Assembly: GCF_037042905.1 (NCBI RefSeq)
Contig: NC_087246.1
Span: 45,570,001-45,634,000 of the forward strand
Length of the DNA stretch: 64,000 nucleotides
Direction: 5' to 3'
Source of the DNA: Lytechinus pictus
Taxonomy: Eukaryota
The notes under the pieces were generated by a model. It saw only the letters and a program-made list of their open reading frames with translations. It had not been told where the DNA came from and ran no database searches. The position numbers and the translations under genes were made by a program. The stretch's first letter is position 1; every line of letters begins with the position of its first letter. This document shows, piece by piece, positions 44,339-59,457 of this stretch.

Positions 44339-45386
44339 TATAACCAAATGTAAGTAATTTATAAATGAATAATTCTTAAATCAGACTTTAACTTTGACTC
44401 GTTATTCTAGTCCTTTTGTATTGTAATTTTACATGAATCATGTTTAACTGAGTTAAAATAATTTCCTTATGTTGACATGTTATCACCTTTTTTCTGTTCT
44501 GAGTATAGGCATATTGTACACTACATGTGTGTAAACCAGTGGATTTTTCCCCTTTTTGGACAATAAACATATAAAGTTATTCAATTCAATCAAGTAGGCC
44601 AACCGTTCCCTTGATTAAAAAAAGTATGTTAAAGGTATATGAAGGATTCAAGCGAAGTGTATGGACGGATATTATTAGCCAAGGCTATTCCAAAGAGTCT
44701 GTAAAAGCACGCTAACCTTAATGGAATAGATGAACAAGGCGAAGGAGACTGAGTAATGTGTGTAGAGTAGATAAACCTGAGAGATATTGGAACTTGGAAA
44801 TGAGATTCTGTAGGTATAGGAGCAAGATAGCTTTCTGAATGTACCCTTCTAGAAAACAATACTTAACATCACCCCCCCCGCCCCCCCCCCCAAAAAAAAA
44901 AAAAAAAAAATCGGACTCGGTGGAATTAACGTTGCCCAATGTAATCTCTTTCATCAGTGGAAACAGGTCCGGAACAACCAAATGAATTACGATCTTATCT
45001 TCCGTTTGTTTTGCTGTGGCATAAACTTATATCATTGTAAATCTTATATTATTGACTATGTAAATATCATTGGCTCATGCTTTTATTTACCTGCATATTC
45101 TTCAACGGGTTTATTACTGTCTGTTATTCCTTCCATGTACCGGCAGCACTGAAATATTATTTCTTTTAGTCTAGAATGAAGACCGTCACGTACATAATTC
45201 AGCAAACAAAAAATTGTTTGCGACTTTGGTTCATTTGCGAAACTTTAATTTCGTGATTTGGACGCTGGATGCTTATGCTAGCTGTGTACCATTTACTTCC
45301 AGCAAAACTCGTCAGATGTGCAAGGTGTAGATACCTTTGGATATAAAACCGGTTCAGTGTCTATACTGAAAAGGAAATCAAGTGAG

Positions 45387-45746
45387 ATGTCTCTGTTATT
45401 TCGCAGTGCTTCTTTGGTTCTGCTGTGGATCTTGATCTCCCGAGTTAAACTTTCTTTTGGATTCTTTAACCTGACAATATTACACACCAATGATTGTTCA
45501 GATCGAATTGAAGAATTCAGTGGTTCGGGCAGTACATGCACCCCAGAGATCAGGGCGGACGACGGATGCTTTGGAGGGGTAGCCAGAAGATCTACGGTGC
45601 TGAAAGACATTCGTGAGGGGGGCACCGGTAATGAAAGCATCATTTTATTGGATACGGGGGACCAGTTCCAAGGCACGGACTGGTTTTACGTGTACAAAGG
45701 AAACAGCACCGCTCATTTCATGAACTTATTAGAATACGACGTCATG
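45387..45746 (+). CDS. 5'-nucleotidase-like exon 1 (signal peptide, HTND, DxGD)
   Basis: MSLLFRSASLVLLWILIS..., LTILHTND, LLDTGDQFQGT; ATG|gtaagc donor. Confidence 0.92.
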
Positions 45747-48700
45747 GTAAGCTGATAACTCGCTTTGAATTTTTAAATGATAACATTAATTGACAGTTGG
45801 GAATATGGAATTTCTAATCAACTTACAGGAATTCATCAGGGCCATGATAACGATTTTTTGGGGCTGGAGGGTGATAAAGTAAATTTGACCAAAAAAAAAG
45901 GTTCCTTTACAAAGTGAAGACCGTTTTGAAAACCATTGCAATCGCGTGCAAAATGTACTTTTACGAAACGGTCACCAAGAGTTGCAAGACCAATAGTAAC
46001 ATTTAAAAGTCTCTTTATCAGTATCTTTATAATCATTATTGTTTTTGTTCTTTGCCATCAACCTTTGAATATTTGATCGTGTAATTAAAAACGGTAAAGG
46101 CAAAGTGTCACATCAGATTTGTAAAATAAGAACGGCAATAAGCGATGCAACTGAACGAATAAAGGCCACAACCATATGAACTTTGATAGTACTTTAAAGT
46201 GTAGTGTTTGATGAGATAACAAACCATTAATCACTAATCATTTCGAATGGTCTACAATCCCCTGCTTTATGTGTTTTATTTCAGACCAGACACCGTTTGT
46301 TATCTGGTTATTTTGCAGTCTTAATATATATATATCTTTTTGTCAAATTCTTTTCGCTACGGTCGCACCTGCGAAACCGTCTCCAGGCCGACCAAAGTTT
46401 AAATTACGATATTTCCCGAATGTTAACTATCGGTCAGTTTGTGTGGTATTACAAGTGTAATCCATCGATATCAATAGGTGGATAGAGCTTCCACGCGCTC
46501 TTTTGAGACCACCGGAAACAAAACCTAAAGGTCAAGCGCGCATAAAAGTTTCACACTTTTTTCTCCTGCGTGTGCGTACGTGGGGTACTTTATGTGTTGG
46601 TATGGTCCCATAATACCATAGAGATATATACTAATAACGCCTAATTAGTATACATCTCTATGCATAATACTGACTGTCTATTCTGTCATGGGTACTTTTC
46701 TCCGGCCTCAAAGGCCGTGCGTGCGAGTGTGCGTACAAGCTCCATCCCGCTTATGGATATCGTTGGTGTATCCCTGCCCCGGGATCCTTGCTCTCCAGTC
46801 AAAGATGGCCCCATCCAATTGTCGATAATACAGTAGATAGTCTGATAGCAGTAGATAGAGTAGGCCAACAATGGCGAAACAATAGGAGGGGCGCCCCTGC
46901 CATTATAATATTAAGTAAAAAATATATATATGTGGCGGAAGGTTCTTTATATCTAAACATTAAAAAATATCCCAATGGGATATAAAAAAAGATTTTGGCC
47001 AAAATGAATAAGTAGAAAAAATCAAATTGATCCTTTAATTCATGCGTTAGCACCAGTTAAATGTCAAATTGTAACTTCTAATAATTCACAAGAGGCATTT
47101 CCGTATATATATTAAACAGCAGCAAAGGAATTAATATTGAACATTGTGGAACTCCGCCTTGGATTGACATATAGGCCTAATATGCGTAAAGCTCCTCAGT
47201 ATTTTGTGTTCATTTTCGGTTATCGAACTCGTTAGTGTATCGAACAATTTCATTAGAGCCAGTAATGTCTTCTAAAACCATATTGATTTGGATTGAACAT
47301 GTGATATTTTTTTGATATATTTTTTCTTAGATTTTAAATATGGTGGGAAAATATATATAGTTCTGTAATTTCTTTATGTCATGGTGGTCTTCTTATGTAT
47401 AAATATAATTTCCTTCAGCAATTTTAAGAGATTCTGCACATTTCCTGGTAAAAATCATTATATTAAAATGTGGGTTTAAGGAGAAACAATATATTGCATA
47501 ATTTGTTTACAATGTGCTTATTTCAGCACGACTTCGCGTAATCATTTTTAGTAATTCATTCATTCTAGTAGAGTATGTTTAAAGCCCGGGGGGCACTTCC
47601 ATTGACGAGTGGATACCATGTATGACCCAAAAACACGTATAAGGATCTCTTTTTCAAGATAGGGTTTTTGACGCCCTTATTACGTTACGTACGTAACGTA
47701 ATAAGGGCGTCAAAACACTAAAATAATGAAAAAGGTAAATAGATTTCGCTAGAAAAACTACGTGTTTACGGTCCAATTTGCGAGGGTACAAAAATACTAA
47801 GATACATCATAAAGGATGTATTATTTGCTCCAGCACTACGTGTTTAGGGTCCGATTTGAGCGAGGTGTGTGGGGTGGTACCAAACCCAATGGCCCGTATT
47901 CTGAAGTCGGGTTTAACTTAGACTCAGGTTTAAAGATGTGGTTTAAGTATGGGAAGCAAAAAGTACCAAATTTTTTTAAAGTTGTATGTTTCTTATGTTT
48001 ACTGTGCTCTTTCCTGATTCATTGATGGTGAAGACAATCATCTATTTATACTTCCTACACAATTATGAATGATTTGAGAGCCGAATGAGCTGAAAGTATG
48101 ATATCTCTACTGTTAGTGATTATGTAACAATTGGCTGTCCATACTTAAACCACAACTTTAAACCTGAGTCTAAGTTAAACCCGACTTCAGAATACGGGCC
48201 AATGAAAGTAAAGGTCAAGCCGGTGTCCGTGTCATAACTAAGATATCGTTGTACTTGTTTAGGGGGCCAATTCAGGGAATACTTGTCAAGGGTACCGCTT
48301 TGTTTCCAATACTTGTTAAGGGTAGGATTTCACACGCCAGTATTTGTTAAAGGGTGCATTTTCAGAACATGGAAAAAAAAATTAGGGTGCTTTTCAAAAG
48401 CCCGTGGTCATGCATGGTAACCACTCGTCAATGGAAGTGCCCCTTGGTTTAAACACTGATCTGAATACTCATTATTCAGATCATTTTGAAGGTTGTAGAA
48501 AAAACTTGGTCCCCTAAAGAATAAATGATGATGATGATGATAATAATAATCTCTCTACCAATAATAATTATGATGATAGTAATAATAATAATAATTGTAA
48601 TAATAATAATAATGATAATTGTAATAATGAAATGACACTCTCAACATCTCCAAGTTTAATGGCATAATATTCAAGAGGAAAAATATCACTGGTATTATCG

Positions 48701-50250
48701 TTTTGTTACAGACTGAATTATTGATAGTATCCTAGGTAGATTTCATATCTCATTTCATTCTATTATTTTGTCGGCGTATAATACATTTTACGAGAAATTC
48801 GAATCATGCTAGGTTTTGTGATGGTATACATGTTGTATTTATTACGTACAGTAGGCTTCGTTTTATAATTTTTATATCGTAATTTTGTGTGCGTATTTAT
48901 TCTAAAGATGCTTTTGCTATCCATGGTATTTTAGGACGTTTACTGATCATGTAAGCTGAAAATGAAAATTGTTGTTCAAATTCCATTTGCTATATTTACG
49001 TTTGACTAGTTAAATATGTCAGGTCACCGTGACTCTTTGTTGATACCCTTTATTGATGTGTTCCATTTCAGTACTTGTTAAATTAGTAGGCTTTTCAATA
49101 GGCGGGGGCGGAGTGACGTCACGACGACAGCACTGACCTCATTTTATATTTATGAATATTTTATATTTTATATATGAATATTTTCCACCTTACGTTTCCT
49201 TTTGACTTTAAGTTAACATGATAATAACATGATAATATGAACCATGGACAATTGTTGTTGCGGCATTTATATTTTGTCCCCACTGATACATTTGTTGAGC
49301 ATTCTATTTTATACAGTAATTCATGCCCGCCTCCCCGCTCACGTCTCCCTCTCTCGTTCCCTTTCCTTCTCTTCTTTTCTCTGCCCTTTCCTTTGTAGGC
49401 CTATTGTTTATTGTATTGTATTTTTGTCATTTCATTTCATTTCGTTCATTTCCATTTTCAACAATTACAGTTTGTTTTGTACATTTTGACATATGAATAA
49501 CAAAACATATTTCAAGTATCACTGTACAAAAATTATATTCAAGATTATTACATAACATCAGGTTGAAAAGGAGGAGGATGTTAAAAAGCGGAGCTTGTAG
49601 AGTGCAGCCTCCTAATAAATATCCTTGTAGTTACATATAGAATATAAAATATAGGCGTATCCCGCCACAAGCCTCGGCTTTTAGGGTATACGCCTTCTTT
49701 TTTAAACCAAACATGTACATATTTATATTCTTCATAACAATTTGATTTTTGTATGAATTAATGTTTAAGAAAAATGTTTTGAAATGGAAGAAAATAAATG
49801 TTTATTTGAATTGAATTGAACTTAGTGTTTTAGTGGCGGCTAGAATTTCAACATCTGTGTAAAGAGTTAAGACATCTCCCTGCAACATCTAAGTCACGTG
49901 TACAATAGAATTCTGTTCCTCCTCCATTAAAGATAAAAAGATATTGTGATCTTCACAAAATGATTTAGATTGCCATTGCGTGGGTCTGTAAATCAATTGA
50001 ATTATTTTGGTTTTGGCAACTGGATTTGTGATATAAAGAAGTAAAGGATTCACTTTCTTGTCGAATCTATACTGTAAAGGGAATAAATTCCCGCATCATC
50101 TGGATAGGGTGCACTACAATTTAGCTAAATTTTTGCTGAAGGAAATTAACACTTCTAGTGGGTTTGAACCCACGACCCTCTGACTTAGATGCCTCCACAG
50201 ACAAGACAGACGCTTTGGATAATGGACGTACTTATACTCCTTATCCTGCT

Positions 50251-50304
<54 letters not shown>

Positions 50305-53300
50305 AAATTATACATGTACAACAGCTTTGGCAACTCTTAATATATTCTGTGAAAGAAATGGATGAAGAGAACAATGGTAGGCGTAGCTTAAATCAAGGTT
50401 CCCCAGAGCTATCTGCCCTTTGGAAAAATTGGCGATGCCGAAATCTCTGCCGGGAATCGAACCCGGGCCCCCAGCTTGGAACGCCGCGGCGTTCCAAGCT
50501 GGTGCCTTAACCACTAGACCACAGAGATGGGTTAGTGGCAAGGGCGACCCCGATCCGATTGACTGTCAGATAAGTGGTATAGTGTCGAAAATCTGTTTAC
50601 AAGTATCAGTAGATTGAAAACACAACAGTTTTGATTCCCAGAAAATGGTCGCTAGACATACTCAAAGAAAGGAGACGCTAGTCCATCTTCTTTGATTTCA
50701 ACTGGCACTTTTATCTTTTACGACGAGCGACCTAATGTTTTATCCGATTATCATGATTATGAAAAACCCCGACCCCAATTCAAAATTCCTTCTGACGGAC
50801 CTTGATGTTGCCGGGCATACAGTTTCACCATGTACCGGCGACAAGGGCGTCAGTAGGGGGTTCATCTATTGTTGCGCCCCCCCCCCCCCAAAAAAAAGAC
50901 AATCCTCTGCGCTGACGCCCATGCCCGGCGATGAATTAATTCTGTTTTATGAACTCATTGTGTTCTCAATTTTCAGGGCTTGTCAAAAAATGAATTTCTC
51001 AGGGGTGTTCCGGGACTGATACCGTTTTTAAATCTAATCGATTTTCCCGCCGTAAGCTCTAATATTGATACGTCCAACGAACCAGCCTTGCAGTCGCTTC
51101 TTAGCCGGAGTCGTGTGATCACTGTAGGGGGAGAGAAAGTGGGCGTGGTAGGAGTAACCAAGCCAGATACTCCCCAGTTGACACCCACAGGTATTGGTAG
51201 TGTCATTTACTATCATCAATGTTTATTTTGATATTCTAGACGTTTACAAGTATTCATTCAACATAGATACCTTCTCTACGCTCTCTCTGTTGGAATATTG
51301 TACCTTCACGTAGGCCCATGTAGTGGGAATACTGAAGCAATGAGATCGTTTTGTAAAAAATAAAGACCCTTCAAGGGATACAGTCTTGGTTTTTTATTGA
51401 AAAAAATTGATACACGTATACTGTAAATTTGAAATTTATGATGAAATGATTGGGACGTAGGTAGTTCACTGTCATCAATTTTGGATGATGATTGCTGAAA
51501 ACACAGCGAAAATAAATAAAATTTCCGTTTATTAATTTCCAGGGAACCTCACATTCCTCCCTGTCATCGAATCCGTCCAGGCAGCCGTTGACAATCTTGT
51601 AGACGATCAGGGCGTCAATAAGATCATCGCACTCAGTGACTCTAGCTTTGATATTGATCAGGAGATCGCGAGGTCCGTTCGGGGAGTCGACATTACGGTG
51701 TTTTCGCCCAGCGTCGTACGACGTAGAACGTAAGGGTCGTGTGCAAAAATTGCCAACTTCCATGGAAACAGAGGCCCAAGCGATCTTGAGCTCAAATCAC
51801 GGACGGTTCTTCCGCAAATTAGCGGGCGTCCGCATTAGAACGTAGGATTTGTCAACAGCCGTCAACAGCCAATCAGATCGCTTGTAGAGTGAGCAAGCTG
51901 AGCCGATGTAAACATTCGCCCATCGCGTGCATATGCACATGTTGTACTCTACTCTGACTACACTGCACTGATAGCTGAAAGCTTCAAAACGATCCGGCCG
52001 CGATCAGCGATTTGCGAAACTGCTTACAAGCGAGAGTTGAGCGCGACGGACGCACGAACCAAGAGATCGTTCTACGTCGTTGATAGCGTCGTACGACGCT
52101 GGGCGAAAACACACTATTGTCGTCGGCGGCCATTTCAATACTTTTCTTTACACAGGTAACATATCCCATGCAAAAGACTTAGTTTCGATGCAGAGACGAG
52201 TGGCGCAGTCACATTTCCCTTTAGGCTTGGTCCCAACCGGCCGCACTCGCAAGTGCAGGCTGACTACTTGGCAATGCAAAAACGAGAGCAAATTTGAGTA
52301 TCCGTGAGTGGCGAGTATTGAGTACCACCTCCGTACGAATCAGGGAGCACGCAGACACGACGTAGCACTTTCAAGCCCCGGTCGAGGATTTAAAACGTAA
52401 AAAAAGAATTCTTGACATCCTTTGGAAAACGCTATGCATCCGTTGTGTAGCCTTCTTGTTGTGTAACTGCCTCGTACGCTCTATTCACCGAGCATCCGTC
52501 CATTGTGATTTCATCCGCAATAATTTTTTAGCATCACAGAATAATATGTCCGCTGTTTCCTCTCTGCATCATCTGGGCATCCTCGCAACGCACATCCACT
52601 CCAGCGACAACACGGAAAGATGGAGATTATATAAGGGCCTGGTCCCACTGGCCGATGGACGCAAAATGTATTCATAAAGGACACAGCGGACGAGCACAAT
52701 TTCGAGGGTGGCTCCATCCGCTCCAGAAATTGACAAAATTAGGGGGAAATTTTCGAAAACATAACGGAAAATAACGGACGTTGGTAGTATTTAGCGGGGA
52801 TGTTAAACGGATGTTCATCGGGAGCCTAGCGGATGGAAGTGGATGGCAGCTCCGAAAGGGCTACCGGGGGTTTTGAATACTTCGAGATGCATACGCTTAC
52901 ATCCTTTCTATTTCCTCGCTACAAACGATGTCTAGACGTTCCACGTACCTTATCTTTCCTCCCTCGAACCATCGTTCAGCTGCAGTAAATATGAGTTGCG
53001 AGGATGCCCAGAGGATGCAGAGAGGATTCAGCGGACGTTTAACTTTAACGGATGATAACGGACATGGAACGTTTGGTGCTCGTTTATGTTTCGGATTAAC
53101 ATCGTACACGGCGGAAAGTTTTGAGCGGATGAAATCACAGTGGACGGGTGCTAAATAGATAGAGCCTATATAACACGTAAGCAATGAGTACACAACGGAT
53201 GCATAGCGTTTTCCTACGGATTGTAAGATTTTTAAATGTTTTACATCCGCTTTTGCATCTGTAAGTGCAGAATGACCGTTCTGTAAAGGCACCGTTTGTG

Positions 53301-53770
53301 TTTTTAGCCCGCAGCGGGTTGTGACCGAGCTTTAGTCCAGGAACATGGTTGCCGTACAGCGAGTAAAAAACGGCCGTTTTAATCATTTTTTTACCAGCTA
53401 CATGTAGGCGGTTCGTATACATGATATAGAAGCTTAAAAAGATACAACAGAATATAATAAATTCGAGGGACAATCCTGCCCCCCCCCCGGAATCACCGCC
53501 CATGAAACTNNNNNNNNNNNNNNNNNNNNNNNNNNNNNNNNNNNNNNNNNNNNNNNNNNNNNNNNNNNNNNNNNNNNNNNNNNNNNNNNNNNNNNNNNNN
53601 NNNNNNNNNNNNNNNNNNNNNNNNNNNNNNNNNNNNNNNNGCAATAATAATAATAAGACATCAGAAATGCGAAACCAATTCACGAGTAATGCATTTTTTT
53701 GCAATGCCAACAATTAAATTCTTTTAATATATATATATATAGTGTAAAGTGTATGTGAGTGTGTATATAA

Positions 53771-53817
<47 letters not shown>

Positions 53818-56800
53818 TACATATATATATATATACTGTATATACATATTTAAAAATAATAAACAATTATTTTATATTGATCGGGAACCCGGCTAGAATG
53901 CACCTTGCAGCCAAATCGTAAGAAGGCCTAACCCACAGTATAGCAGTTTTAAGTATTTATAAACATAATGTACTAATAAACTAGAATAATTGCAGTAATG
54001 TTTGGAGAATTTACCAAAACTGAAGAACGACCCACAGTTAAAATTGAATCCATGTAATTTCACCACACTATGCACAAAGTTTCTGTGAAACATATCGATA
54101 CAACTTCATTTATTTAGCCTATTTGCTTTCTATCAAATTTGCCAAATTGAAAGTAAGGTAGAATAACGCAATCACGAGATTTAGGGTCCATTAGAACCCT
54201 CAGGATCATAGCGTTGAGTTCAAATCCCATGCCCAGTTCGCTAAATTTTCCATTTTCACTTTAGTTCAGAAAGGTTTACAAAATACATGATAAAGGTTTG
54301 GTGAGGAAATGACATGGATTTCATTTTAACCGTGGAACGTCATAAGGAGCTCATTTCCTATCCGAATGTGTCTTCTGGCTTCAGGTGACCCACCTTACGA
54401 CGACAACGCCAAGAAAGGCGACTACCCTTTGGTCATCAACCCGTCTTACAATGACAGTCTTGAGGTCCTCGTCGTTACCGCCTACCGTTTGGGCAAGTAC
54501 CTGGGTTATCTCGAAGTCACATTCGACGATGATGGTGTTGTGACGTCATATGCGGGGAATCCAATTGTCCTGGATAAAAACGTCGAGGAAGGCAAGTCAT
54601 TGTTGTGATTAGTATGCTGCATGCTGTTGCATAATTTCATGCTGCTGCCATGGGTATAAAATGCATTAATAGTCTCTTGTAACTTAAGGCCTGAATGCAA
54701 ATTAATAGACAGTAAAAATGATATTTATAATGTTTATACAACGCTGTTTAGTAAATCAATTGACTGTAGTTTTTTAACCGTTTAAACAAGTGTTAGCTAC
54801 CATAGGTGGTTCAGAATTTTTTTTCAGCCTTCTAACCTATATAAACACCTGGGTTTCCCTTGTTTTTGAGACCTTAAAACCATAAAATGCCGTTAATATA
54901 GATTTTAGTTTGACAGAACGTTCAATACAAAGTCTATGATCGATATTTGAGCTAGCGAATTTCAAGCAGTTGCGACCAAGCCTCTGTTATTTAATTGGCT
55001 TCTTTCCGAAGAGGTGATAGGATGAATCTCCGGACTTTGAACCACGAGGTCCGGGACTCGAATCCCACCTCAGCATGCAAGTGCGTCCCTTTGGCAAGGG
55101 GTTCAATCTACATTTGCCACTCTCAACCCAGCCGCAGCACTTAAAACATTGTATTAATCGTGCTGGAAAGAACACAGTGACACATAGTTTGATCACAGTG
55201 TGTTCACATAGTGGACTACGTGAAAATATTAATATTTTAACACTGTTAAAATGCTCAAATTCAACAGTGTGAAGGTATTGTCACACTGTGGTCCCCTCGA
55301 CAGCGTTACTGTTCAGAGCGTGTTCACATGGTCAACTATATGTGAATATGTGATTCATACTGTTGAAATGTGAAGGGGATTCCACATTGTGTTCCACACT
55401 GTGAACACACTGTGGCACACACTGTTGGACATTGCTTTCTTACCAGTAAGGAATCGCTTTATAGATGTGGCATATTATGATCAATATCGTTTCTTACCTT
55501 AGATCCTTTTGTGTTAGAACAAGTGGAAACCTACAAAGTCCTAGTGGATAAAATCTCAACCACAGTAGTCGGGTCATCAGATGTGGAGTTAAGTGGACGC
55601 GTCAGTGTATGCGGTGTCGGTGAATGCAATCTGGGGAACATGCTTTCGGACTCAATGAGGCTCTTTCACGGGACTGAAAATGAGCTTGACATCGCCATAA
55701 CCTCCGCCGGGAGTTTTGCTTCATCGATAGAACAGGGTCAGGGCGGTTTCACTCTATTTTACGAAGATTGATATTAGTCACTGGCGTATATATTGGGGGA
55801 GGGGGCTTAACAAATCTCACGACCAAGAAAAAAAAAGGAAACTTAAAAATAGAGAAAAGCAAATTAAAATTGTAAGATTTTTTTTATATATAATTTTCTA
55901 AATATAGTGTCAGAATCTATAATCTATATTAAAACTAAATTTTCGTGTTACAACTCTCATTTTATTTATTAGCTCGCGACTTAGTAGAAATTTGACTTAT
56001 TTCAAATAACGGTCACTCGATGGACAGTCAAATGAGGTTATGGTGTATATGAGCTATTTATTCCCATTGATAAGCATAACGTGATGGGTGAAGTGCACCT
56101 ATATGAGTCTCCCTAAAATCTTTTCCAGCTAGCCCACGCAGCCTACCGGTTTTACATCATACATACATATTTTTTTTATATTGGGAGCCCGATCAAAACA
56201 AAATATATGAGTGTTTTTGTCTTGTTAATCTAAAACCCCTTTTTTAGGCAACATCACTATCAGTGATCTGACGCGTACCCTACCGTACGGTGACACAATC
56301 GACATTCTCTCTCTTACTGGTCGATCTATCATGGACATTCTGGAACGATCTGTTGAAGATTTTGATATATCAACTCCATCTACTGCCTTCCTTCAGCTAT
56401 CAGGTATCGTCTTCCACATACTTTGAATGATTCTGTCCGATTGCTGAAATGCGAATCACGTCATAAATTGTAATTGCTCAAAGGCCCTTTTAAAATAAGA
56501 ATAAGAACATTAACGAAAGAGGGAATTAGGTGTCAAATTTAATTGTAACAGATAAAAAAGCCCGAATTTGAATTCTCTGAAATCACTTTACTTTTGTAAT
56601 CAGAATGTTAGACAGATGATAATCGAGTATAATTCATATTAACTGACCCGTTACCAAAGCGTCAGGTGGGTTTTAAAACTAATACTGCTGATGGCAGCGT
56701 CAAAGGCATGTGTACCTTAGAAGTGGTAGAAGAGGGATTGAACCCCTTGGGGGCGTCGTGGTCTAGTCGGTAAGACTCTCGTCTTTAAATCTGAGGGACA

Positions 56801-59457
56801 TGGGTTCGATTCCCAGCCATGGCGTGTTTTCCTTCAGCAAAAACATTACTTACATTGTGCTGCACTCGACCCAGCTGAGGTAAATGGGTACCACCTTGAA
56901 GTAATTCTTCAAAAAGCTGTGAGCACCAGATCCTGTAGACTACACACTAAGAAATCCCAGTGCAAATGGGGTGTACGTATCGTACACCCCATATGCGTAC
57001 ACCTCAAAATACCATCGAGGTGCAAGTTAGCTCTTTTGCGAGAGTCCGTGTCTGTTGTACACCCATGTACTCTTTCGTGCACTCCACCAGTCTCGCTGAT
57101 AGACGTATGGTATAGATAGAGTTGATTTGTGATCGAAGATTACCCAAAATAACAATGCACTTACGCCACACTTTACCTAAGTGAAATCGTTTTTTTTTTT
57201 TTTTTTTTTTTTTATGTGATGTTGATTGTTTCAAAAACACATTTGATTACGTCATGTACGTATACCTTTGGAGAAACAGTAAATAGAGCTATAGTTGAAC
57301 CACAACTATAAGCACAAATCAAGAAAAGAATCGGATCATATCGCTAGATACCTCATTCGCTGTCAGCGCTTCTCGCTGGCATAGCGGAAAGAATCTTGAC
57401 TACAGATAAAACGAGGTGAGTTCGAGTCCCAACTAAGGTAATTAAAAAAAGCGATACAGAAAGTGAATGGACCGGAATTCTCGACGATCATTTATTTTGC
57501 GGTTCATTATGCATCCTAAGGGGTAGAAGTGTACTAAGGTGCAGATGGACACCCAAAATAGGGGTGCACACCGCTAGGGGTACTCGTATAGGGACAAGCC
57601 TGTGCACCCTTAGGGGTGTAAAATTGAACCCGAATTTCTTAGTGTGTAGCTTACCACGGGTAATATAGGAGCGCCTTGAGCACCTATCAAAGGTGGATAC
57701 GTGGGCTATATAAATCCTATTCTATTATTTGATATTATTCGGTGGTGAATCCAGAAGAGAAGCCGGTAAATTTCCCATTTATCACATTGTCTAATTCCAA
57801 AGTTAAGCTCAACATATTTTGTCCCATATCCGCTGGGTGTAACACCACTTAGTGCATTGTGACTAGATGAGCTGTTTATAATCCAAGTTTTTAACCATAA
57901 ACAAAAATCAGTAGACTAAGTAGAAATTAGATCATCGGGGCGTAAGTCAAAATTAAAAACATAATATTCGTATTAAGTATTAGACTAAGTGCAGTGCAAG
58001 TTACTTACTGCCCGTTATACAGTACCTCCTGGTGGGTGTTTCATAAAGCTGTTCGTAAGTTAAGAGCAACCTTAAGATCGACTGGTGATCCTTTTTTAAG
58101 GTAAATGATATTCACCATTAATGTTCATTCTTTATTATTTAGCGCGTAAGAAAGGTTCACCAGTCGTTCTTATAGTTGCTCTTAACTTACAAACAGCTTT
58201 ATGAAACGGCCCCCTGGTATGCAGGGCAGCAACAAGAGCTTTCCACTACCGTCAGTCTTTGGCCAGTCTCTGGAGTGATCGATCCCCAGGTCTGTGGGAA
58301 GTTCCTCCACGGTCCGTCGCCAGGTAAAGTGCCAGCCAAATGGCAATGGGTAAGTCCCATGTGGTATTTGAGAAGTAGGCTAACCGCTTGTAGTACAAGT
58401 AAACATATAAAACTGAATGTTTATTATTATTATTATTATTATCAACTGATATCTCCATTAAGGAGTGAAGGTCGAATTTAACCTTGATCGTGGAAACGGC
58501 GAGCGAGTTGAGAGTGTCGAATTACTTTGTGACTCTTGTGAGGGAGGATACACTGACATCGACGTCGATGGCGTCTACCTTGTCGCCATGAATAGCTACA
58601 TTGCAGGGGGTCAAGAGGGATACACGATCATCCTCGATAGAACTATCAGTCGAGAAACAGGTATGCAATGTTCAATTAAACTTTCACAAGTCGACCGTTT
58701 GTAAAGTCGTACACTCGCCCTAGTCGAAGTAAGTGTTTTAAGATGCTTAAGGTCGAACACATTCCTGTGTACCAAAGGATGCGACTTAGGCAAACTTGTA
58801 TTTTTTTATTGTTCGGTATTATGTTAAAGTAGGTATATTTTGCAGTTTCATTTTCTAATCATGATAATGGTTGTTGGAAGCGATGATCAGCCACTAATTA
58901 CACAATCTCCCATGTATCGATATCACAAATAATATTTATCGAAACCGTCCTTAGACATGCTGTATTTTGCAAGCTGGTGGGATAAGCGGGAATAGCAAAT
59001 AACATTTCTTCATGTCTTCATTTACATTCATAGAAAAGTAACAATCATGGTAATGATTCTAAGTTAACTTTATCCATCCTTTTGCTTTTACTCCTTAATG
59101 ATAATATCGACTTTGCAGTAAACATTTAATTTATGCCAGTACACCACTAAATATATCGCTCAAGTCATTCATATAATCGTTTAAAATAGAAGTGTTTAAT
59201 ATTGTTTTGTTTTTTTATACTAATATTCAAACTACTAAAATGGTGCAAACACGATCTCAAATGTTTTAAACCATCAACCAATTCTATCATTGGATTCTTT
59301 AGGTAACCTGGACGTAGACGTAGCCGCGGATTTCTTGAGAGAGAATTATCCTTTCAAAAGCAGCATTCCTCGTATCGTTTTCAGTGGATCGAGCATGCTC
59401 AAAGCCCCAATCCCTTGGGTTTTGTTTCTTCTTTGTTTATGTAGCTTGACGGGTTGA
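45387..59457 (+). CDS. NT5E: Ecto-5'-nucleotidase (CD73/NT5E)-like GPI-anchored protein, ~570 aa, 8 exons; degenerate active site; exon 3 interrupted by a MITE in this sequence
   Basis: Exons 45387-45746, 50977-51190, 51543-51694+52119-52155, 54385-54591, 55503-55736, 56248-56403, 58463-58660, 59303-59457 total 1713 nt in frame once the MITE and one TSD copy are removed. Motifs LTILHTND, CFGGVARR, LLDTGDQFQGT, GVNKIIAL, GVDIVVGGH.NTFLYTG, GKYLGYL.V.FD, ECNLGN, FLQ.SG. Signal peptide and GPI-type hydrophobic tail present. The symbol denotes the family. Confidence 0.9.
46617..46662. mobile_element. 46-bp minimal hAT-like element
   Basis: 19-bp TIRs (1 mismatch) around an 8-bp spacer; exact 8-bp TSD CATAATAC. 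Confidence 0.8.
47585..48447. mobile_element. MITE with CC(C)GGG-type termini, host of a nested insertion
   Basis: TIR ggggcacttccattgacgagtggataccatg / catggtaaccactcgtcaatggaagtgcccc. Confidence 0.82.
47891..48200. mobile_element. PIF/Harbinger-like MITE with ~60-bp near-perfect TIRs
   Basis: ggcccgtattctgaagtcgggtttaacttagactcaggtttaaag and its exact reverse complement; 3-bp TSD AAT. Confidence 0.9.
48524..48630. repeat. (GAT)n/(AAT)n simple repeat
   Basis: Read directly. Confidence 0.9.
50090..50200 (-). mobile_element. Degenerate tRNA-derived SINE fragment
   Basis: On the minus strand: B box gggttcaaaccc followed by ttccttcagcaaaaa, as in the SINE at 56749. Confidence 0.55.
50254..50304. 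repeat. (TA)n(TG)n microsatellite
   Basis: Read directly. Confidence 0.95.
50443..50528 (-). other. tRNA-like cloverleaf (pseudo-tRNA or repeat head) with a palindromic expanded anticodon arm
   Basis: 7-bp acceptor stem ATCTCTG/CAGAGAT, A box TGGTCTAGTGG, T arm CCGGG-TTCGATT-CCCGG, 32-bp perfect palindrome at 50471-50502. Confidence 0.75.
50977..51190 (+). CDS. 5'-nucleotidase-like exon 2
   Basis: GLSKNEFLRGVPGL...FPAVSSNI...VGGEKVGVVG; tttcag/gtattg borders. Confidence 0.9.
51543..52155 (+). CDS. 5'-nucleotidase-like exon 3, split by an insertion at 51695-52115
   Basis: GVNKIIALSDSSFDIDQEIARSVRGVDI | VVGGHFNTFLYT; ttccag/gtaaca borders. Confidence 0.88.
51695..52115. mobile_element. 421-bp MITE inserted in coding exon 3 of the 5'-nucleotidase-like gene
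   Basis: 26-bp perfect inverted repeat gtgttttcgcccagcgtcgtacgacg just inside the ends; 3-bp TSD ATT at 51692-51694 and 52116-52118. Confidence 0.93.
52224..53331. mobile_element. PIF/Harbinger-like non-autonomous element with long imperfect inverted arms
   Basis: TTA on both sides; ggcttggtcccaacc/ggttgtgaccgagct termini; internal IR gaaaacgctatgcatccgttgtgta / tacacaacggatgcatagcgttttc. Confidence 0.8.
53510..53640. other. Assembly gap (131 N)
   Basis: Run of N. Confidence 1.
53728..53836. repeat. (TA)n-rich microsatellite
   Basis: Read directly. Confidence 0.9.
54385..54591 (+). CDS. 5'-nucleotidase-like exon 4 (GC donor)
   Basis: GDYPLVI...VVTAYRLGKYLGYLEVTFDDDG...GNPIVLD; ends G|gcaagt. 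Confidence 0.88.
55012..55132 (+). mobile_element. Degenerate tRNA-derived SINE head
   Basis: B-box-like ggactcgaatccc followed by gtccctttggcaagg...ttgccactctcaacccag. Confidence 0.55.
55503..55736 (+). CDS. 5'-nucleotidase-like exon 5
   Basis: DPFVLE...VVGSSDVELSG..VCGVGECNLGNMLSDSM. Confidence 0.9.
56248..56403 (+). CDS. 5'-nucleotidase-like exon 6
   Basis: GNITISDLTRTLPYGDTIDILSLTG..I..ILERSV...FLQLS; not in the ORF track. Confidence 0.9.
56749..57729 (+). mobile_element. tRNA-derived SINE, interrupted by a MITE
   Basis: A box gtggtctagtcgg, B box gggttcgattccc, core cactcgacccagctgaggtaaatgggtacc, tail gcgccttgagcacc...ataaat(tat)n. Confidence 0.82.
56943..57646. mobile_element. CAC...GTG-terminated MITE inserted into the SINE
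   Basis: cacactaagaaat/atttcttagtgtg TIR with TA duplication; the flanks rejoin to match the uninterrupted SINE copy at 29710-29834. Confidence 0.82.
58032..58212. mobile_element. PIF/Harbinger-like MITE
   Basis: gtttcataaagctgttcgtaagttaagagc / gctcttaacttacaaacagctttatgaaac; CTG flanks. Confidence 0.78.
58463..58660 (+). CDS. 5'-nucleotidase-like exon 7
   Basis: GVKVEFNL...GERV...LCDSC...Y...NSYIAGGQEGY. Confidence 0.9.
59303..59457 (+). CDS. 5'-nucleotidase-like exon 8 with GPI-anchor signal
   Basis: GNLDVDV...RIVFSGSS followed by hydrophobic tail PIPWVLFLLCLCSLTG*. Confidence 0.85.

Follow-up and report, generated by a model that had tools for sequence, protein, structure and literature searches.

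Human CD73 (NT5E; PDB 4H1S and 4H2I) and the snake-venom 5'-nucleotidase, which combine a metallophosphoesterase N-domain with a 5_nucleotid_C domain, provide a solved structural frame for the gene considered here. In human CD73, three His residues hold two zinc ions and one His is paired with Asp121, whereas the phosphate is contacted by N245, R354 and R395, the ligand is hydrogen-bonded by N390, and the base is stacked between F417 and F500 (PMC12797170). The subject of this analysis is a CD73-like gene of the sea urchin Lytechinus pictus, which occupies positions 45387-59457 of the + strand, in eight exons, within a 64,000-nucleotide window (the whole stretch of DNA that was analysed, from contig NC_087246.1, positions 45,570,001 to 45,634,000). 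With a probability of about 0.62, this gene appears to be a fold-preserved, non-catalytic paralogue (a pseudoenzyme) of the echinoderm type-2 CD73-like ecto-5'-nucleotidases, a subfamily defined below, with null alleles segregating at the locus.

The encoded protein shares with CD73 and the venom enzyme both domains, a putative signal peptide, a glycosylphosphatidylinositol (GPI)-like tail, three of the four disulfide pairs, the residues D36, D85, H243 and N245, and aromatic residues at positions 417 and 500, at about 41% identity overall. It differs from them in the replacements H38S, N117K, H118N, D121L and H220D, which would abolish metal binding and the catalytic pair, and in the absence of R354, N390, R395 and the Cys pair 365-387. 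Because metal, catalytic and clamp residues are all affected, hydrolysis of adenosine monophosphate (AMP) by the known mechanism is not expected.

Inactive relatives of such enzymes have been described in two other forms. CD73S, an isoform produced by splicing of human NT5E, is reported to be without catalytic activity and to regulate CD73 negatively (PMC4263446). It is, however, a splice product lacking an exon, which is retained in the endoplasmic reticulum and unable to dimerise, whereas the L. pictus candidate is a separate full-length gene with point replacements. VPS29, a subunit of retromer, combines a metallophosphoesterase fold with a catalytic site that is incomplete, and it serves as a scaffold (PMC5748213); it belongs to a different, single-domain cytosolic family, and the analogy extends to reuse of the fold only. 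A literature search returned no description of a gene-encoded dead paralogue in the CD73 family, of echinoderm NT5E genes, or of the type-2 subfamily.

Changed Motifs and Retained Scaffold

The exons were aligned individually to solved CD73 and bacterial 5'-nucleotidase structures. Exon 1 (45387-45746, 120 codons), placed by translation and by alignment to the CD73 and snake-venom 5'-nucleotidase chains, encodes a signal-peptide-like start with a hydrophobic core, followed by HTNDCS in place of HTNDVH (H38 to Ser, codon 45498-45500) and by LLDTGDQ, in which D85 is kept. In exon 2 (50977-51190), aligned to 2z1a and CD73 chains, LGNHEFD has become LSKNEFL (N117K, H118N and D121L), with SKNEFL standing at 50983-51000 instead of GNHEFD. 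Exon 3 (51543-52155) is split by a miniature inverted-repeat transposable element (MITE). Its 5' part (51543-51694), aligned to human CD73 and covered by RNA contigs from two of the runs discussed below (X1 and X3), reads ALSDSSF instead of ALGHSGF (H220D, codon 51638-51640) and ends with ATT, the duplicated target of the insertion; its 3' part (52116-52155) encodes I-VVGGHFNTFLYTG, in which H243 and N245 are kept. Exons 1-3 match CD73 and bacterial 5'-nucleotidase chains with E = 4e-23, 4e-11 and 3e-5, respectively, and are singly too short for the Pfam Metallophos threshold. Of the five motifs of active metallophosphoesterases (D-x-H, G-D, G-N-H-[ED], G-H and G-x-H), three are thus broken (D-x-S, S-K-N-E and S-D), and G-D and G-G-H are kept, with D36, D85, H243 and N245 among the retained residues.

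The C-domain is recognised in exons 5, 6 and 7, each of which scores above the gathering score of Pfam 5_nucleotid_C and which jointly cover profile positions 1-155 of 158. Exon 5 (55503-55736), also supported by alignment to CD73 and the venom enzyme and by RNA contig coverage, carries CGVGEC for CRFxEC, without R354, and SAGSFAS for NGGGIRS, without N390 and R395. Exon 6 (56248-56403) encodes PYGDTID, which in the multiple alignment places Tyr at the F417 stacking position. Exon 7 (58463-58660), aligned to human CD73, contains LCDSC, which holds one of the Cys pairs, has Tyr where CD73 has F500, and reads GGQEGY for NGGDGF, with GQEG instead of GGDG; the length of the X1 contig fits the modelled splicing of exons 7 and 8. 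The residues of the CD73 AMP clamp are accordingly not preserved, since R354, R395, N390 and D506 correspond to Gly, Ala, Ser and Glu, with Tyr/Tyr at 417/500. In exon 8 (59303-59457), the small residues SGSS are separated by a spacer from a C-terminal run of 15 hydrophobic residues (hydropathy 2.07), an arrangement resembling a GPI signal, before a TGA stop at 59455-59457. Taken together, the N-domain homology and the C-domain matches assign the product to the 5'-nucleotidase/CD73 family (PF00149 and PF02872).

As read from these alignments, the two-metal centre of the predicted protein has lost H38, N117 and H220, three of its six ligands, and the catalytic His118-Asp121 pair is gone as well. 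Such a protein cannot be expected to perform the canonical two-metal 5'-nucleotidase reaction, including AMP hydrolysis by the family mechanism, and we infer that it lacks this activity. It is probably displayed on the cell surface, because the leader, the glycosylation sites (six N-glycosylation sequons), three disulfide pairs (Cys 51/61, 360/365 and 476/479), the fold residues and the GPI-like tail have all been kept. The original prediction, made from the letters of the DNA, had listed the substitutions HTNDCS, SKNEFL, LSDSS, CG..EC, SAGSFA and GQEG, and had proposed alignment to CD73 as a check; all six hold against the solved CD73 and bacterial chains, and a codon check agrees with the positions it gave for the first three. 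Its list of retained features (D36, D85, H243, two aromatic residues and three Cys pairs) is likewise confirmed.

An Echinoderm Type-2 Subfamily

A word-indexed search with a profile built from three relatives and with eight exon pieces returned 120 family members. The nearest full-length relatives are all from echinoderms (Diadema, 48.7% identity; Strongylocentrotus purpuratus, 45%; L. pictus itself, 44%), and the gene falls within an echinoderm-wide clade, here termed type 2, with support of 99 in a quick tree and 84/86 in a more careful one. In members of this clade R354 is missing, position 390 is Thr, position 395 varies, the GGDG motif is without its Asp, and PYGNTID is present. Uncharacterised type-2 proteins such as Diadema P0176, S. 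purpuratus P0183, L. pictus P0187 and Acanthaster XP_022098145.1 (P0011) share with the gene C-[GY]-x-x-E-C, T/S-x-G-S, PYG-x-TID and the missing Asp of GGDG, with HTNDC as in urchins. In contrast to the gene, which has lost three of the five motifs, the type-2 members of urchins, starfish, brittle star and crinoids retain complete metal and catalytic motifs (HTNDxH / GD / GNHEFD / GH / GGH); compared with these proteins, it sits on a long branch at an identity of only 44-49%.

Since other type-2 members share the C-domain changes yet keep the metal and catalytic site, these changes are best read as old divergence of the subfamily. On the aligned sequences, the loss of R354, N390, R395 and D506 belongs to the ancestry of type 2, and only the N-domain losses are specific to this gene. 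The dismantled active site put forward in the original prediction is therefore to be divided: the losses of H38, N117, H118, D121 and H220 stand as events of this gene, whereas those of R354, N390, R395 and the GGDG Asp were inherited. The C-domain changes of type 2 probably reflect a substrate other than AMP.

These observations on type 2 cover P0176, P0183, P0187, P0170, P0172, P0165, P0160, P0011, P0184 and P0174, and also P0177, P0119, P0231, P0191 and P0200. The signature of the subfamily (metal site full, R354 and the GGDG Asp absent, Thr or Ser at 390, position 395 variable, PYG-N-TID) has look-alikes in anthozoans and two hemichordates. The jellyfish Rhopilema has a protein of the ordinary CD73 type, and cnidarians seem to have both types.

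Sea cucumbers possess a type-2 clade of their own (Holothuria leucospilota P0167; Apostichopus japonicus P0023, P0151 and P0152) in which the metal site is also damaged. N117T and H243R, affecting two metal ligands, occur in two genera, and 115-121 of 138 subfamily-invariant residues are kept. These proteins share CG-x-GEC, PYGDTID and several other substitutions with the L. pictus gene and, unlike it, keep H38, H118, D121 and H220. N117 and H243 were lost independently in this clade, which may be another and older instance of type-2 proteins with impaired catalysis. Evidently, proteins of this subfamily can endure with a damaged metal site. In the quick tree the gene is sister to the sea-cucumber clade (support 89), but the careful tree left its place within the subfamily unresolved, and an approximately unbiased (AU) test did not reject its grouping with the intact urchin paralogues (p = 0.46).

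In a reversal of the type-2 pattern, two CD73-like proteins of the brittle star Amphiura filiformis (P0037 and P0038) have dead N-domain motifs (HTSTVT or HTSDVT; GNLEFT or GNLEFA; LGGANLF). The C-domain nucleotide pocket of P0037 is intact (CRRREC, NAGAIRA, GGDGY), and that of P0038 mostly so, its model ending before GGDG. The two look like an independent candidate pseudoenzyme, and perhaps a nucleotide binder.

Distribution of the Changes

The protein was aligned with 31 relatives, and invariance was judged in 28 of them, ranging from cnidarians to vertebrates, with the sea-cucumber type-2 proteins left out. Of 67 columns invariant in these 28, the protein keeps 59 and changes eight, namely H38, G116, N117, H118, D121, G219, H220 and one Gly of GGDG, all within active-site motifs. 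In leave-one-out controls with nine sequences from conserved lineages, between zero and three such columns were altered, none of them at the eight positions concerned. The eight textbook metal and catalytic residues had been named in advance as the set for a Fisher test, in which five of eight were changed, compared with three of the 59 other invariant residues (p = 2.9e-4); those three are glycines within the same motifs, and the remaining 56 non-catalytic invariant residues are intact. Several replacements cannot be reached by a single base change but need two or three, and three or four changes have accumulated in each of two motifs; the loss of catalysis is therefore judged to be old. The fold-defining residues have nevertheless not drifted, as is characteristic of a protein retained for a non-catalytic use.

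Transcripts and the Insertion-bearing Reference Allele

RNA contigs from three independent studies (runs X1, X3 and X5) and one raw-read run (X12) were mapped to positions 50900-56899. Spliced transcripts were present in the runs of all three studies. The X1 contig, 1386 nt long, extends from the end of exon 1 to just beyond the stop codon. The joints seen are 51190/51543, the exon 2-3 splice found in X1 and X3, 52155/54385 and 55736/56248, the last present in three runs, with X5 additionally showing the GC-AG joint 54591/55503. RNA depth was zero in the introns checked (51300-51499 and 53500-54099), for which reason the signal is spliced mRNA and not contaminating DNA. X3 and X5 contain no frame break where they cover the gene, although neither spans the whole coding region.

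The MITE (51695-52115) is 421 nt long and, according to inverted-repeat searches, has perfect 26-nt terminal inverted repeats at 51698-51723 and 52087-52112. It is flanked by a 3-nt target duplication, ATT, at 51692-51694 and 52116-52118. Because the 26-nt repeats are perfect, the insertion is recent. In the reference allele, the element shifts the frame and the computed translation stops after 254 residues. The X1 and X3 contigs cross the site and skip 424 nt between 51691 and 52116, with ATT common to both sides; this is the element plus the 3-nt target duplication, and the joint restores GVD-I-VVGGH, the canonical motif. A 37-nt piece of both contigs sits between this joint and the joint at 52155, and RNA depth inside the MITE was zero in all runs. 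Removal of the element by splicing was considered and rejected, as the skipped segment has the ends AT..CT and the joint falls exactly at the target duplication; moreover, the sole AG in the element usable as an acceptor leaves the wrong frame. The transcripts that span the insertion site are MITE-free and encode GVD-I-VVGGH; the assembled haplotype is therefore a null insertion allele, unlike the transcribed copies, which are free of the element. The transcripts would derive from MITE-free alleles of this locus in other animals. Frame disruption, the usual mark of a pseudogene, is accordingly found in the reference allele but not in the MITE-free transcribed form; with the element and its target duplication removed, the frame of the gene is open over 570 codons plus a stop. 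This agrees with the original prediction, in which the MITE was the only interruption in about 570 codons and a search of RNA sequencing data had been suggested; transcripts do occur, correctly spliced, in three studies, and those of the two runs that cross the insertion site lack the MITE.

Selection within the Species

Between the reference and the transcript contigs over exons 2-6, the 19 listed differences, which are a sample of all contig differences, comprise 12 synonymous and seven non-synonymous changes. With 251 synonymous and 749 non-synonymous sites, pS = 0.048, pN = 0.009 and pN/pS = 0.195 (binomial p = 5e-4), and the gene looks constrained by purifying selection. About 2.4% of exon bases are not the same in the contigs as in the window, and all three runs have several of these differences in common. 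Three non-synonymous differences (E to K, L to V and D to H) lie within 13 nt at 55676-55688, in a surface loop, and at each of them the RNA runs of the three studies agree against the MITE-bearing reference.

Proposed Origin and Role

Several features are those of a pseudoenzyme: homology to active enzymes without their catalytic residues, spliced mRNA with an open frame (apart from a 17-nt loss in X1, discussed below), and purifying selection. The original prediction favoured a selected non-catalytic protein over random decay. The confinement of the damage to active-site motifs, the 59 of 67 invariant columns kept and the pN/pS value support that preference; half of the changes it had listed, being ancestral to type 2, are neither redesign nor decay of this gene. 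In the scheme proposed here, a type-2 paralogue would have lost its metal and catalytic residues while its fold, leader, disulfides and GPI-like tail stayed and, like the rest of its subfamily, would have been without the arginines with which the phosphate of the nucleotide is clamped. Through their C-terminal domains, CD73 enzymes form obligate dimers. The most likely role would be that of a non-catalytic partner at the cell surface, which would serve as a binding protein or form dimers with an active paralogue, by analogy with CD73S. A young MITE in exon 3 has made the reference allele null, and MITE-free alleles would be transcribed in other animals.

A broader version of this scheme would unite the gene and the sea-cucumber type-2 proteins in one old urchin/sea-cucumber lineage of GPI-anchored proteins, which would have abandoned metal catalysis hundreds of millions of years ago and been kept as a partner at the cell surface without catalysis of its own, such as a regulatory subunit in dimers with the active type-2 enzyme, with type 2 itself being an undescribed branch acting on a non-AMP substrate. 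We regard this version as doubtful.

Alternative Explanations

A number of observations weigh against a conserved non-catalytic role, and several of them feed its main rival, namely that the gene is a pseudogene in the making, in which catalysis was lost, the gene recently became dispensable, several null alleles arose, and the open frame and conserved residues are leftovers. No ortholog more than 50% identical was found in any other species, annotated urchins included, by word-indexed and exon 1 profile searches. The exhaustive profile search with exon 1 returned nothing above 61% identity, and its two best fragments (P0003 and P0006, on contigs of 0.7 and 1.0 kb) represent a catalytically intact urchin paralogue; a search with exon 2 alone gave no candidate, but it also missed the species' own sequence, so this blank is uninformative about other species. 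The terminal branch of the gene is long, at 1.15-1.27 changes per site. RNA contig depth is only 3-11, and the deep raw-read run X12, of which a quarter was read, left the exons without coverage; the gene is accordingly expressed at a modest level or in a restricted manner. In addition, X1 joins 54568-71 to 55497-500; relative to regular splicing of exons 4 and 5, this transcript is short by 17 nt, and the resulting frameshift stops translation after 333 residues. A 3-nt microhomology, CCT, is present on both sides of this joint and allows four equally good cuts, none of which yields + strand splice signals and one of which has the ends CT..AC. The joint reflects either a deletion allele of 928 bp that arose at the microhomology or an aberrant splice. 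Two frame-breaking forms, the reference MITE with its truncation at residue 254 and the X1 loss, have thus been found among the few haplotypes sampled, and for this reason present-day constraint may be weak. The motif codons of the transcribed alleles are presumed to be unchanged. Against impending loss stand the pN/pS of about 0.2, which is incompatible with neutral evolution over the period in which the alleles coalesce, the 56 of 59 non-catalytic invariant residues that are intact despite the long time since catalytic loss implied by the multi-step changes, the recent date of the MITE given its perfect repeats, and accurate splicing in three studies. We consider this rival unlikely on balance.

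The same transcripts raise another question, namely whether they come from this locus at all, as a second, near-identical intact copy elsewhere could produce them and leave the present one a dead duplicate. The exon-base difference of about 2.4% from the window, partly common to the three runs, would fit such a copy, and the DNA runs, holding only 5-10% of the sampled words, are too sparse to separate allele from copy. The MITE-free joint lies exactly at the target duplication, however, and intron positions are identical, as would be expected of alleles; a synonymous divergence of about 5% would not be unusual for alleles, sea urchins being highly polymorphic, and no second copy exists within the 64-kb window. 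A separate copy is accordingly quite improbable. Least credible of all is continued enzymatic activity with a changed chemistry, whereby D36, D85, H243, N245 and Asp220 would bind one metal and the protein would act on a phosphoester other than a nucleotide. It does retain N245 and three metal ligands, H220 has been replaced by Asp, a possible ligand, and the type-2 subfamily seems to have a different substrate pocket; but the general acid/base pair His118-Asp121 and Asn117 have been replaced by Asn, Leu and Lys, at positions that are invariant in 28 of 28 relatives from cnidarians to vertebrates. The non-catalytic, fold-preserved paralogue remains the preferred reading.

Gene Structure and Flanking Elements

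The introns of the gene are GT-AG, except intron 4, which is GC-AG: exon 4 (54385-54591) is followed by the donor GCAAGT, and the X5 contig joins 54591 to 55503 directly. A TATAAA box on the + strand (45342-45347), found by pattern scan and by inspection of the sequence, lies about 40 nt 5' of the start codon and may serve as promoter element. An assembly gap (N run, 53510-53640) lies within intron 3 (52156-54384). A hidden exon in this gap was considered and rejected: in the RNA contigs of two runs, 54385 follows 52155 without any inserted base, and the protein passes straight from FLYTG to DPPY across intron 3, as in CD73. No second NT5E-like gene or tandem paralogue was detected within the window.

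Two tRNA-like sequences lie in introns. The first, resembling tRNA-Ser(GGA), is situated in intron 1 on the - strand (50442-50528), about 450 nt 5' of exon 2 (ARAGORN; Rfam tRNA 54.5 bits); it could be a tRNA gene or the head of a short interspersed nuclear element (SINE), in either case outside the coding gene. The other, in intron 6 (56752-56892; Rfam tRNA 30.4 bits), coincides with a stretch in which the summed RNA-contig depth reaches 18,000-44,000 with many loose ends; most probably it is the head of a SINE from an abundant tRNA-derived family that many transcripts carry.

Significance

CD73 is a major drug target whose non-enzymatic roles are debated. A natural full-length member of its family that retains the fold, disulfides and membrane signals but lacks catalysis would be a clean model of scaffold function. 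The analysis also exposes an uncharacterised echinoderm type-2 subfamily, in which the metal centre is intact and the phosphate-clamping arginines are absent. Finally, the filled and empty MITE alleles would offer a natural knockout for probing the dispensability of the gene.

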